A stretch of DNA of 64,000 nucleotides from Octopus sinensis (GCF_006345805.1 NC_043004.1:82522001-82586000); one strand, 5' to 3'; positions 1 to 61,690 are shown, numbered from the stretch's first letter. Program-made: numbers and translations. The notes: generated by a model not told the origin, from the sequence alone.

Positions 1-1260
1 AAGATATCACTTATGAACATATCACTGAAATCTCTCAAATGTAAAAATATCTGTATCTCTGCCTTTTACATCCTGTGTCGTGTATATATGATTACAAACC
101 CCATTATATCTATGTATGCTATAATAGGATTGCTTCATAAATCTCATGAAAGATTTGTATTTATTTATTTATGCACTATTTTTTCAGTGTTTGCTCTCAC
201 TCTACTGTCTGATCAAATTCTTCCGAAAATTTAAAGACGAAGAAATACTCGGAATATTTACTGAACTCAAAATTGAAAAAGCCGATGAAAAATTCTATAA
301 CATTAACTTAATATTTTCTTTTATATCACTTTCTATAATTGTATTGCTGCCGCCAATTTTGCTCGCTCTCATGAGAATCGTTCTCACTATTCTCATGAAC
401 TCTGTTTCGAATTCCTCAACAAAATATTTAAGCAGCATCGAAACTCGTGAATTTAATACTTCAGTAATTTGCACTTTATTTGATTGCATATTTTTTACGT
501 GCTTACTCTATGATTGGTATATCAATATGGCAATTGGAACTGCACTGCAGTATGAGTTTAATAAAGTAGTGAGCGAGGCTGAGAAATACCTAAAAGAAAA
601 GCATTCGAATACTTCGTATTTCTTTAAGAAATATAAAGAGATTCCAGAAATATGTAACTCACATAATACTCTGAGTAAAACATTGAATTTAGTAAATGAA
701 TCATTTCAACTGACTTTGGGACTTATCGTACTCTTTAGTATTACTGGATGTTGTGTTGCTACGTATATAATTATAAATATTTCATACAAAATTATACTCA
801 CTTATTAGGTTTCCATTATGTTTGTGGCTTCGTTGAACATGATTCTTCTGATCACAACGATGAAGATTGGAGTTCGTTTAAACAAATCGGTAAGTTATAT
901 AATAATATATACTCGTTCTTTTTCTTCATTTCTATTTTACATATTACATCATAAAAGATGTCGAATATGTTATCCAAATTTCCTCGGAGTTTTAAATTTA
1001 TGTGATATCATCTACCGATATCCGTCTTGCATCTTTTGATTCCCAAATGTGAACATGAGATACAGGTAAAAAAATGGACAAAAATCTCTCATCATTACCA
1101 CCAGGTCTATTATTTCTACCACCATCTAATTTTCTTCTCATTCCATCATTCAGACACACTTTCTCTCTCTTTGACTTTGCAACAGTTCTTTGTGAAAGGT
1201 GTCAGGGATGCCACACAAGATCTCGCTTATCTAAGAAATGATGAGTGTTTGTGTGAATAG
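1..1260 (+). pseudogene. GR/GRL-like multi-TM receptor copy A1 (5' end cut by the window; frameshift and premature stop)
   Basis: ORFs 13..234, 146..808 and 818..1039 are consecutive parts of the family protein. An extra TTTA near 160 shifts the frame, and TAT-TAG at 803-808 replaces TAT-TAC. GTAAGT at 890; pyrimidine tract plus CAG ending at 1185; putative last exon 1186..1260. Confidence 0.8.
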
Positions 1261-1639
1261 TTAAAAATCTGTTCACATGGACGCGCTATTGGCCAATGCT
1301 AGTAATGGTTTTATTTCTAGCAGACAATGTTACGATATTCTAAGAATTCAATAATAAGTGATCTCTTCAACAGAAATATTTGAAGACGTCGTTTAAAAAT
1401 TAATAATGCTCCACTGATGTTTTTGGATTTCCCAGAAGTTTTATTTTCTTTTTTGGGTCACGTATTTATTTCTTATTTCCTTATTTCTTTACTTCCTTCT
1501 GTTTTTTGTTTTTCTTTCTTTCTTCTGTTGAACCTGCTCTTCCTCGTCCTCTTCCTTCACCGAGTTATTCTACTAATTAAAAACAGCAACCACAAGAACA
1601 ACTAAATAAAAACTACCAACAACAGCAACAATAATAATC

Positions 1640-1762
1640 CTACTTAAATCACTTTCAATACAGTCACCATAGGAGCACCGCAATAAACCATAACACTTAA
1701 CCTAGGCACACACAGCTCCGTTTTGTAGTGCAGTGAACGCGCGTGATAAAAAAAGCCACTGA
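1640..1762 (+). mobile_element. Old 3'-end fossil of an R4/Dong-type retrotransposon
   Basis: Similar to the 3' UTR of the Dong copies at 6200-6310 (..cacttaacctaggcacacacagctcc..gtgaacgcgcgtgataaaa..cactgAATAAT). Homologues at about 29975-30097, 43745-43865 and 53480-53597. Confidence 0.65.
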
Positions 1763-1950
1763 ATAATAATAATAATAATAATAATAATAATAATAATAAT
1801 AATAATAATAATAATGATGATGATGATAATAATAATAATGATAATAATAATAATAATGATAAAAATAATAATAACAATAATATTAATAATAATAAAAATA
1901 TAATAATAATAATTATGATAATAATAATAATGATAATATTAATAATAATA
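1762..1950 (+). repeat. (AAT)n/(GAT)n compound microsatellite
   Basis: Direct reading of the sequence. Confidence 0.97.
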
Positions 1951-58540: not shown

Positions 58541-58848
58541 ATATATATATATATATATATGTATATATATATATATATATATATATATATATATACATAT
58601 ATATACATATATATATATGTATATATATATATATATATATACACATATATATACATATATATATATATATATATATATATATATATATATATATATATAT
58701 ATATATATATATATATATATATATACATATATATACATATATATACATATATGTATATATATACCTACACCTATATACAGAAACACACACATTTAATCAT
58801 ACCTATGACAGAGAACAATTTATATTTATAAATATATATCTGTATATA

Positions 58849-60474
58849 CAGTTGCGGCTAAAAAGGTTCAGAACGGCATTGTTATCGTCATAAAAGTAGG
58901 CACAATTTTTTTTATCAAAATTGTTTTATATTCTATAATTTTCATAGACAGTAAATACGATATTATTTGTTATTGTCTGAGATTTTGGTGTAATTTGAGA
59001 GGATAATACAAAAGTTATGGATGATTTAGGGATTTACTGCCAAACCCATGCCGGCCAAAATGTTTAGAACGGTTGAAAAAATAACAAAATAGTCAAACAT
59101 GACAGCGAATACTGGAATTATTTAATATTTATTGTGAAGCCCTTTAGCTTCAATCACACTTTGACATCTTCGATTGCATGAGGAAATTAAATTTTCAATT
59201 TCTTGCTAGGTGAACTTATTCCATTCTTCCTGAAGGGCATTCCATAATTTCTCGGTTGTTTTAGGATTTCTGTCTTTCGAACGTTCTCCTAGAATATTCC
59301 ACACATTTTCAATAGGATTGAGATCTGGGCTTTGAGCAGGCCAATCCATAATAATAACCTTTTCAGCCTTGAGGAAGTTCATGACGACTTTAGCCTTGTC
59401 ACATGGGGCATTGCCCTGCATGAACATGGATGATCGCTTAGTTGAATTTCTCAGCACAGGCAAGGCATGATCTTTTACAAGTTGTTTATAAACTAATGCA
59501 TTTACCTTTCCATGTGATCGCACCAAAGAGCCCATACCATCCCCAGATATCATCCTCCAAACTATGACACTTCCTCCGCCAAATTTAGTCTGAAGGCATT
59601 TAGGCGACAATTTTTCACCTACTTTTCGACGAACGTACCTTTTCCCATCTGAGCCAAATAACATAAACTTAGATTCATCACTGAAATGCACCGTTTGCCA
59701 TTTTTCTTGAGACCACAACACATGTTCGGTTGCAAAGGTAAGACGACACTTTTATTCTTGGAGCTGATCAGTGGCTTCACTGCAGGAGTTCTTGCTTATA
59801 GGTCATGTTCAACTAAACGACGAGACACAGTTTTTCGAGATCAAGTTTTCTTCAGTACAATGCTCATTTCCCGAGAAACAGCAGCAGCAGTTTTAAATCT
59901 GTCCATTTTAACCAACATTACCATAGCACAATCTTCTCTTTTGGTCGTTTTTCTTGACCTACCTATAGACATTCTTGCTTCACACGAACCACAATCATTG
60001 TAGACCTTAAGAATACCGCGAATAACACTTTTTGACTTGTTAACAATCTTTGCAATAGACCCAATACTTAAATTATCCTTTTTTCGAAGCTTAATAATCT
60101 GCTAACGAATTGGTAACGGAGTAAGTGGCATTATATTAACAAAGTACACTGCAGATATTCTTACTAATGTTTAGTAAACGAACCGTCACGTAAACAAATT
60201 CAAATCATTAGGGTTCGCCGGTTAAATATACTAAAACACGGAGTAAAAGCAACTGTTCTGATCATTTTATCCGCCATAGATTTTGCAGTAAATCACTAAA
60301 TCATCCATAACTTTTGTATTATTCTCTCCAAATACACCAAAATCTCAGACAATAACAATACATATCGTGTTTATTGTCTGTGAAAATTATAGAATATGAA
60401 ACAACTTTTATGAAAAATTATACCTACCCTTCTGACGAAAACAATGCCGTTCTGAAAATTTTGGCCCGCAACTG
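58849..60474 (-). mobile_element. Tc1-family (DD34E) DNA transposon, decayed
   Basis: Imperfect TIRs of about 200 bp beginning CAGTTGCGG, flanked by TA. Transposase runs from ATG near 60131 to 59206 with stops and frameshifts; motifs FSDESKF, MQGNAPC (catalytic D to G) and WPAQSPDLNPIENVW. Confidence 0.92.
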
Positions 60475-60757
60475 TATATATATATATATATATATATATA
60501 TATATATATATATATGCACAGAACTGTCTTGCTGGTAAGATGCTTGCTTCCCAACCGCTCGGTTTCGCTTTCGTTTGGCACGTGTCTTCTACCATTGCTT
60601 TGGGCTGACAAAACCCTTCTCAGTGTGTTTGGTAGAGGAAAACTTAAAGAAGCCTGTCGAAAATATGCATGTATATATATATATATATATATATATATTT
60701 GTATGTATTTTTGTGCCTGTCTTTGTCACCCATACCAGAGCTTAACAGCTGATCGTA

Positions 60758-61690
60758 TAATTGTATATATTTATGCACTAATTCTTCTGTGTTTCATATC
60801 AATCTACGGTCTGATCAAATTCTTCAGTAAATCTAAAGAGAAAGAATACGCGAAGCATTCACCGAACTTACAATTAAAGAAGACGATGAAAAATTCTATA
60901 ACAATAGCTTAATATTTTCTTTTATATCTCTTTCTATAGTGATGTTGCTGCCGCCTATTATACACAATATCATAGTATACGTTCTCCCGTTTTCCATGTA
61001 CAACGTTCGGAATTCCTCAACAAATTATTTAAATGCAAGAAAAACTCTTGAATTTATTATTTCATTAATTTTCACTATATTTGATAGTATATTATATGCG
61101 TGCATACTATATGATTGGTATATCAATATGACAATTGGGACCGCACTGCAGTATGAGTTTAATAAAATAGCGAGTGAGGCTGAGAGATACGTAAAAGAAA
61201 AGCATTCAAATACTTCGTATTTCTTTAAGAAATATAAAGAGATTCCAGAAATATGTAACTCACATAATACTCTGAGTAAAACACTGAATTTATTGAATGA
61301 ATCATTTCAATTCTGTTCGGGATTTATCGTACTCATTAGTATTACTGGATGCTGTGTTGCTACGTATATAATTATAAATCATTCATTTCAAAATACTTTC
61401 TCTGAACATAATTCCGTATTATTTGTGACTTCGTTGAACACGATGCTTTTGATCAGGACGATGTGGATTGGTTTCGTTTTAATAAATCGGTAAGTCATAT
61501 AATATATAATCGCAATTATTCTTTAATTCTATTTTCCATAACACATCATAAAAAATATCGAAATGTTATCCTAATTAAATCGGTCTTTGGAATTATGTGA
61601 TATCTTTCCTTCCGATATCCGTCTTGTATCATTTGATTCCCAAAGGTGAACATGAGATAGAGGTGAAATAATGGAAAAACATCTTCCATT
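60758..61690 (+). pseudogene. GR/GRL-like copy B3 (5'-truncated pseudogene, near-identical to B1)
   Basis: ORFs 60514..60912 and 60939..61493, with the same frameshifts as B1 but TAT where B1 has TAA. Confidence 0.85.

Follow-up and report, generated by a model that had tools for sequence, protein, structure and literature searches.

The stretch of DNA considered here, 64,000 nucleotides from Octopus sinensis (GCF_006345805.1 NC_043004.1:82522001-82586000, hereafter the window), carries nine co-oriented copies of a long exon for the first six transmembrane helices (TM1-TM6) of a gustatory receptor-like (GRL) protein. The window, which corresponds to the plus strand of C8:82,522,001-82,586,000 in the 2.72-Gb assembly searched, is probably the distal part of a very large GRL locus, in which tandem alternative first exons (variable, or V, exons) are spliced to shared 3′ exons (constant exons). 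This account is built on the exon anatomy, on the assignment of family and fold, on a ratio of 66 V-exon matches to six sets of constant exons, and on RefSeq isoforms in which other V exons of the same unit are joined to the constant set next downstream of the window (set A). A preliminary description, made from the sequence alone, had taken the DNA to be probably that of an octopus, which is correct, and had read the nine copies as nine genes, which they are not.

Variable first exons and shared constant exons

When the product of the copy at 50224 was compared with the window by tblastn, exactly nine copies were found, all on the plus strand and at the places previously named; the division into six of A type and three of B type, and the intact first coding segments at 24440, 28285 and 50224, were thereby recovered. 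These three copies are intact from the ATG through the conserved GTAAGT donor, comprise 311-314 codons and end in ...AAATCG|GTAAGT. The remaining six, which are decayed V exons, are damaged by stops, 5′ truncation, an 11-nt duplication or, in every B-type copy, loss of some 74 codons from the start; the birth-and-death evolution proposed earlier agrees with this. In the copy at 19206, a 1-nt deletion directly before the retained GTAAGT brings the donor out of phase. This copy and the one at 60763 sit in ~99% identical blocks (19106-22449 and 60663-63960), and they were dead before the duplication.

The exon boundary was compared among 20 intact copies, the three of the window and 17 from the same chromosome. 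All 20 end at ...G[IVL]x[LIV][NH]x[SA]|GT[AG][AT]GT, a phase-0 donor just past the sixth helix; the units of the window are first exons that stop after TM6, not complete genes, and are without the pore-forming last helix. Open reading frames (ORFs) of 330-396 aa arise because they run past the donor into the intron; the protein of 330-385 aa given in the preliminary description mixes such intron-reading frames with the true length of the spliced product, which is 382-385 aa with the constant exons.

The constant region was found via a family profile search of 1.8 billion proteins. Two RefSeq models extend different first exons by almost the same 71 residues (VHSIT[QR]SIHYMQFQ..EVVAK / ILVFLNRLTTESHGIDVGGCFVITPSSTLT / MIGSFITYILVVIQTK[PS]L), and this region corresponds to three small genomic exons, C1, C2 and C3, of 23, 30 and 18 codons, respectively. 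They have polypyrimidine-AG acceptors, C1 and C2 have GT donors, and C3 ends at the stop codon; the junctions of V with C1, C1 with C2 and C2 with C3 are all phase 0 with AG/GT signals. Encoded are the TM6-TM7 linker, TM7a and the pore helix TM7b.

Genome-wide there are only six such sets (A to F; Table 1), and when the whole genome was searched at the DNA level for the C2 exon, the number of copies was likewise exactly six, with identities of 88-100%. Set A (C8:82,785,443-82,788,359) is the first on the same strand downstream of the window; from the donors of the exons at 24440, 28285 and 50224 to this set the distance is about 238, 234 and 212 kb, respectively. V exons are far more numerous: at least 66 six-frame matches, all on C8 within 82.50-83.26 Mb (0.76 Mb), form a plus-strand and a minus-strand block in convergent orientation. 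They make up some 50 V-exon loci, about 22 of them with an open frame; about 34 loci (about 12 intact) lie upstream of set A across about 285 kb. Among five of the sets the 90 nt of C2 are 97-100% identical in DNA, even between sets on opposite strands ~0.3 Mb apart, whereas V exons have diverged down to 32-40% protein identity (up to ~65% difference). This disparity in sequence suggests concerted evolution or gene conversion, or else very strong constraint on the pore module; the divergence of the V exons would fit free divergence of the sensing module.

RefSeq isoforms join different V exons of the array to a shared constant set. In LOC118764608, isoforms X1 and X3 attach two V exons to the same, residue-identical set A, with a span of 36 kb from V to constant exons. 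In LOC118764607, isoform X2 joins the outermost minus-strand V exon to set E, ~80 kb away, and skips 7 intact V exons, one with a stop and two fragments; X3 and X4 connect another V exon to the same set. The O. sinensis RefSeq proteins XP_036361419.1 and XP_036361423.1 are encoded on C8, the contig of the window, and O. bimaculoides has an orthologous model, LOC106880719 X2. Nor is the array absent from databases; it is represented in RefSeq and UniProt by multi-isoform models named "uncharacterized protein", some with a precomputed PF08395 tag.

A few side observations concern the array as a whole. Units B, C and D (C8:82,788,359-82,866,981) have one or two upstream V-exon matches each, all partial or with stops, and may be decaying duplicates of the 3′ end of unit A; set C has changes in C2 and C3, and the C3 exons of sets D and F, missed by a regular expression, were recovered by tblastn. 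Since a few V-exon fragments oppose the orientation of their block (C8:82,623,081-82,624,102 on the minus strand; 83,203,570 and 83,215,161 on the plus strand), local inversions appear to have occurred within the arrays. C1 of set E has an alternative internal acceptor (C8:83,177,998-83,177,930), such that some isoforms omit its first 14 codons (VHSITRSIHYMQFQ, ending in CAG) and start at DIKPEVVAK; it is seen in the LOC118764607 isoforms P0035 and P0037 and results in two lengths of the TM6-TM7 linker.

Use or decay of the distal exons

In the proposed mechanism transcription would begin at one V exon, which would supply its own ATG, an N-terminal helix and TM1-TM6, that is, the part holding the ligand pocket by analogy with the structures of insect odorant (OR) and gustatory (GR) receptors. 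Its phase-0 donor would be joined to the first constant acceptor, that of C1, and the product would be a subunit of 382-385 aa with a private sensing half and a common pore/anchor half. By the same analogy, the shared exons would supply TM7a as the cytoplasmic anchor for tetramer assembly and TM7b as the lining of the pore, and homology would predict that the subunits assemble into tetrameric ligand-gated cation channels. We infer that the three intact V exons of the window would be transcribed from promoters of their own and spliced like the proximal V exons, to give chemosensory channel products.

Whether these three exons are used is close to an even question, with at best a slight lean towards use. 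The most serious alternative, though an unlikely one, is that the V exons of the window are evolutionary debris: only those near a constant set would be used, and the distal young duplicates would be silent and simply not have gained stops yet, as copies so recent (synonymous divergence, dS, of 0.06-0.12) could stay open by chance. Against debris speak the three open frames of 311-314 codons, each with an ATG and an exact donor, and another intact V exon, at 82,504,824, which is yet more distant on the upstream side. Between the exons at 50224 and 24440, the ratio of nonsynonymous to synonymous divergence (dN/dS) is 0.44, with a confidence interval below 1 (bootstrap 95%, 0.24-0.92). Hardly any insertions or deletions separate these exons (one 3-nt gap that keeps the frame, over 939 nt), but they are common in the flanks (14-48 gap positions per 500 nt).

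Several findings weigh in the opposite direction. The copy at 28285 has a dN/dS of about 1.0-1.1 relative to its neighbours, and the confidence intervals span 1 for the window pairs other than 50224/24440; selection on the window copies is weak, and dN/dS among the intact copies, which the preliminary description had proposed to estimate, is largely indecisive on function. Of the nine copies, six are broken, and stops occur in most copies at 82.59-82.72 Mb; the unit may be in decay towards its distal end. The splice needed, 212-238 kb, is about three times the longest span documented here (~80 kb). Protein searches retrieved no transcript or protein model that contains a V exon of the window, and no annotated isoform uses one. 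On inspection, the regions upstream of the 20 V exons have no shared motif, and the lack of any conserved element ahead of divergent V exons leaves private promoters hypothetical. A TATAAG/TATAAA box ~40 nt before the ATG was considered as a promoter and rejected, as only close paralogues of the window share it and the genome is ~70% A+T.

For the window product, searches yielded nothing beyond a short ORF from Logan and a gene model of O. vulgaris that is chimeric. This model, a 'hypothetical predicted protein' (P0002, 360 aa), is assembled from an unrelated N-terminus, a middle portion of one V exon and the beginning of a copy that is identical with the 50224 exon. The Logan/ENA relatives (P0003-P0008, P0016-P0024) result from ORF calling across the donor (…SVS…) and are uninformative on expression. 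With truncated RefSeq models, a chimeric O. vulgaris model and six-frame ORF callers that enter the intron, the annotation of such loci is mangled; because gene finders miss or mangle them, GRL counts for cephalopods in comparative studies are likely too low.

A bolder version of the spliced-locus account, which we hold only tentatively and consider doubtful, sees a locus of the protocadherin style: about 22 intact V exons in few giant units would be chosen by their promoters and spliced over up to ~240 kb to a near-invariant pore/anchor module, and the young intact exons of the window would be its newest, still diversifying members. If true, GRL channels would be a second ionotropic chemosensory repertoire of the octopus, beside its chemotactile receptors, and no larger variable-exon unit would be known for the GR superfamily.

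It is very improbable that the nine copies in the window are instead complete genes in tandem, independent of one another and each provided with downstream TM7 exon(s) of its own, although tandem complete genes are the usual layout of chemoreceptor arrays, each copy was counted with its own ATG, and one distant relative (P0024) has a C2-like exon of its own nearby. The 64 kb contain no sequence resembling a constant exon (tblastn, best E 0.93), C2 occurs only six times in the genome, and the RefSeq isoforms share constant exons across V exons. No private second exon was found near any copy when downstream ORF pieces were compared by blastp among divergent paralogues, nor by blastn between paralogue pairs, by three-frame translation inspected by eye for 690 nt past each donor, or by the regular expression [ST][YF]x5[QE][FYLM]. 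A short interspersed element (SINE)-like repeat (...GGCGAGCTGGCAGAAACGTTAGCACGCCGGGCGAAAT...) in the introns is the sole sequence shared downstream of divergent V exons; close V-exon pairs have short similar stretches directly after the donor, which look like residual duplication rather than exons. Between some neighbours there is also too little room for private 3′ exons: after the exon at 50224, which stops at 51165, another copy starts no later than 52124, and elsewhere in the array the starts of two intact V exons are separated by 2.9 kb. In annotation, the units of the window should be assigned to one locus, as its alternative first exons and pseudo-exons.

Family and fold

The preliminary description had assigned the proteins to the GR/GRL family, as opposed to G-protein-coupled receptors (GPCRs) or chemotactile receptors derived from nicotinic acetylcholine receptors (nAChRs), largely on a motif ahead of TM5. 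The assignment holds up, on other evidence: the motif alone is a weak signal (profile versus Gr43a, E = 3), and the decisive sequence evidence lies in the constant exons, outside the DNA then described. Comparison of the family profile with PDB sequences was discarded as evidence, as Gr43a came third, with the said E-value, behind ferritin noise.

The relevant Pfam family is 7tm_7 (PF08395; 370 profile positions, curated cut-off 26.6 bits). First exons alone of the three window copies gave no significant Pfam match, only noise (Vma12, DUF2207_C, EBP), and four of the 20 first exons match 7tm_7, at best with E 0.0028. Ten V-exon products were also scored with constant exons attached (set A for those of the window): six have E<1e-3 and four are without a match. 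The product of 28285 scores 28.5 bits and is matched from end to end (protein 36-380, profile 28-367), that of 50224 scores 25.7 bits, just below the cut-off, and other full-length members 25.2, 28.5, 36.7 (E 3.9e-9) and 21.2 bits; the 7tm_7 check envisaged earlier succeeds with set A attached and fails for the first exon by itself. No competing Pfam family was better than E 0.01, and neither a GPCR nor a Neur_chan match was obtained, for the 20 first exons or the ten full-length products. The full-length family profile finds a Haliotis asinina protein, 'gustatory receptor 5a for trehalose-like' (P0038), at E 1.4e-8; in hhalign the two align with 97.1% probability (E 7.4e-11) along 214 columns that reach from TM4 to the end, and the abalone protein itself scores 56 bits on 7tm_7.

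C3 encodes GSFITYILVVIQTK. Its version of the TM7 motif TYhhhhhQF is TYILVVIQT, which agrees at T, Y and Q but has T for the final F (3/4). This motif, whose counterpart in Gr43a is ATYLVILIQF, is located outside the window. The gene plan, one long exon and three short ones with intron phases 0-0-0, agrees in layout and phase with that described for insect GRs, and with 382-385 aa and seven TM helices the product lies within the GR/GRL criterion of about 350-500 aa. Long loops rich in K/R (31, 54 and 61 aa) alternate with short K/R-poor ones (26 and 4 aa), which by the positive-inside rule would fit a topology with the N-terminus inside, the C-terminus outside and longer intracellular loops. 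Once the C-terminus is joined, membership of the array products in the GR/GRL (7tm_7, 7TMIC) family is supported.

AlphaFold (AF2) models of the full-length LOC118764608 X1 (P0034) and of the 50224 exon product were compared with the PDB by Foldseek. The former (pLDDT 76.6, pTM 0.73) has an N-terminal helix, TM1-3, very long TM4-TM6 extending to one side, TM7a and TM7b; its top 21 matches are all insect OR/Orco/GR structures (probability 0.99-1.00, TM-score 0.43-0.59, 347-419 aligned columns), and those beyond, GPCRs included, have probabilities <0.2. The latter (pLDDT 81.1, pTM 0.81) has the six helices that had been predicted for the first coding segment, and its top 3 matches are DmGr43a (probability 1.0), followed by AgamOR28 (TM-score 0.54), Orco and BmGr9 among others; the last two are the structures with which a comparison had been proposed, and for the monomer they do match. 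ABC-transporter structures mixed into this list have TM-scores ≤0.27, GPCR structures in the two lists a probability ≤0.16 and TM-scores ≤0.21, and no pentameric-channel structure is among the matches of either model. The models thus support a packing of helices shared with insect OR/Orco/GR subunits (7TMIC fold), at modest Foldseek E-values (best 3e-3). Two points count against the assignment: TM7 is modelled at low confidence (pLDDT 33-51 in P0034), and some members, the folded RefSeq protein included, miss 7tm_7 at E<0.01 when searched alone. That the proteins belong to another multi-pass membrane family, such as GPCRs or transporters, to which the noise-level Pfam results of the first exon and the full-length members missing 7tm_7 might point, is nonetheless barely credible in view of the end-to-end 7tm_7 matches above cut-off, the TM7 motif, the 0-0-0 final introns, the hhalign match to the abalone GR and confident Foldseek matches to insect OR/Orco/GR only.

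Surroundings of the copies and known systems

The window has a G+C content of 29-38% and is rich in microsatellites and retroelements. Non-LTR retrotransposon ORFs (RVT_1, zf-RVT, a weak endonuclease match) occupy the space between its V exons; two copies (3031-4975 and 11180-13123) are 98% identical, which indicates that they were inserted, or duplicated, recently. An open frame of 378 aa with a Cys-rich C-terminal part (21428-22564 and 62939-64000, both on the minus strand) lies within the ~99% identical blocks; it has no Pfam match and is probably part of an unclassified mobile element.

The distant relative P0024 (profile E 6e-4) was found in contigs of a eukaryotic assembly, ENA ERZ25072999; its C2-like exon (LFLFRLQGPPIGLTVLGLFVITMASLLS|gt) follows ~650 nt past the long exon and, judged by sequence, it would have the ordinary layout, in which each gene has 3′ exons to itself. 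When the genome was searched in six frames with PF08395, one match passed the cut-off (30.5 bits), on a small unplaced contig (C4133:137-508), a sub-threshold one fell in the array (19.8 bits) and several weak ones on other chromosomes; these are suggestive only, and further GRL genes may exist outside the array.

Table 1. Features of the window (positions in the window), of the array on C8, and of a distant relative
Feature	Location	Strand	Remarks
A-type pseudo-exon	1..889	+	5′ end cut by window edge; stops and frame break; GTAAGT donor kept at 890
B-type pseudo-exon	19206..19915	+	residues ~75-308; start region missing; internal frameshift, 2 stops
A-type intact variable first exon	24440..25378	+	ATG, 313 codons (TM1-TM6); phase-0 donor TCG|GTAAGT at 25379
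A-type intact variable first exon	28285..29217	+	311 codons; donor at 29218
A-type pseudo-exon	42028..42985	+	ATG and donor present; 11-nt tandem duplication near 42753 shifts frame
B-type fragment	46978..47393	+	residues ~75-210 only; no donor
A-type intact variable first exon	50224..51165	+	314 codons; donor at 51166
A-type 5′-truncated copy	52124..52731	+	residues 115-314 only; frameshift; donor kept at 52732
B-type pseudo-exon	60763..61472	+	near-identical recent duplicate of 19206 copy; same lack of ~74 N-terminal residues, internal frameshift and 1-nt deletion before donor
Non-LTR retrotransposon ORFs	3346-6213, 7649-10200, 11495-14177, 39541-41861, 53990-55690	+	RVT_1/zf-RVT
Non-LTR retrotransposon ORF	17261-18826	-	RVT_1/zf-RVT
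Tc1/mariner-type transposase fragment	59206-59751	-	DDE_3, E 1.7e-12
Constant sets A-D	C8: 82.785, 82.806, 82.831, 82.863 Mb	+	genome search
Constant sets E, F	C8: 83.178 (E), 83.108 (F) Mb	-	genome search
C2 exon in five near-identical sets	C8:82,786,419 / 82,806,745 / 82,831,701 / 83,106,093 / 83,173,959
LOC118764608 X1 (P0034, 389 aa)	V exon at 82,748,777		with set A; RefSeq isoform model
LOC118764608 X3 (P0015)	V exon at 82,766,337		with same residue-identical set A; RefSeq isoform model
LOC118764607 X2 (P0035)	V exon at 83,258,149	-	outermost; with set E, ~80 kb away; RefSeq isoform model
LOC118764607 X3, X4 (P0011, P0037)	V exon at 83,242,671		with set E; RefSeq isoform models
Distant relative P0024	long exon 10001-11056, C2-like exon ~11700-11806		contigs of ERZ25072999

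Insect-type gustatory receptors are known from molluscs, and work on chemoreception in cephalopods has centred on GPCR expansions and on nAChR-derived chemotactile receptors. A full-text literature search of incomplete coverage found no paper on GRLs or a GRL array in octopus or other cephalopods, in keeping with the statement of the preliminary description that none was known to it. The family was already known, as was the first-exon plan in insect GR and OR genes; new are the cephalopod host, the size of the array and the six constant sets in two convergent blocks. The octopus holds roughly 22 intact GRL sensing modules.

The chemotactile receptors are, like the array products, ionotropic, expanded and clustered in octopus; they are pentameric Cys-loop receptors and not of the 7TMIC fold, and none of the present results ties the GRL array to suckers or any other tissue. 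With the abalone GR homology is significant and the C-termini are almost superimposable (MFLNRLTGNDIGLSALKMFVINRPAILTMIGMLITYFVLLVQFKS versus VFLNRLTTESHGIDVGGCFVITPSSTLTMIGSFITYILVVIQTKPL), but TM1-TM4 are very divergent, hhalign aligns the two only from TM4 on, and the last residue of the motif is T in the octopus instead of F; C-terminal exons are shared among the octopus genes, and the comparison with abalone covers the protein only. Clustered protocadherins and UGT1A also have tandem variable first exons, joined in cis to constant exons over up to hundreds of kb; the proteins are unrelated, and promoter choice would apply to the octopus by analogy only.

The closest parallel is offered by insect GR loci, in which tandem long first exons share three short final exons in phases 0-0-0, e.g., Gr28b, Gr39a and Gr23a of Drosophila and Gr60a-m of Blattella with 13 isoforms (PMC6175461); a long exon followed by short 0-0-0 exons is listed among the hallmarks of GRLs (PMC7746228). 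The octopus array belongs to the same family and has the same long TM1-6 exon, three short phase-0 exons for the conserved C-terminus and TM7, co-oriented first exons with their own ATG and donor, shared 3′ exons and interspersed pseudo-exons. It differs in its host, a cephalopod mollusc, in having about 34 V-exon loci in one unit versus 13 in the largest cockroach example cited, in its six constant sets in two convergent blocks, and in its retroelement-filled introns of tens to hundreds of kb, across which the use of distal exons such as those of the window is inferred. The plan of a long first exon and three shared phase-0 exons is thus also found in a lophotrochozoan, at a much larger scale than in insects, which would point either to a long-standing propensity of the ancestral GR gene structure or to convergent use of it.

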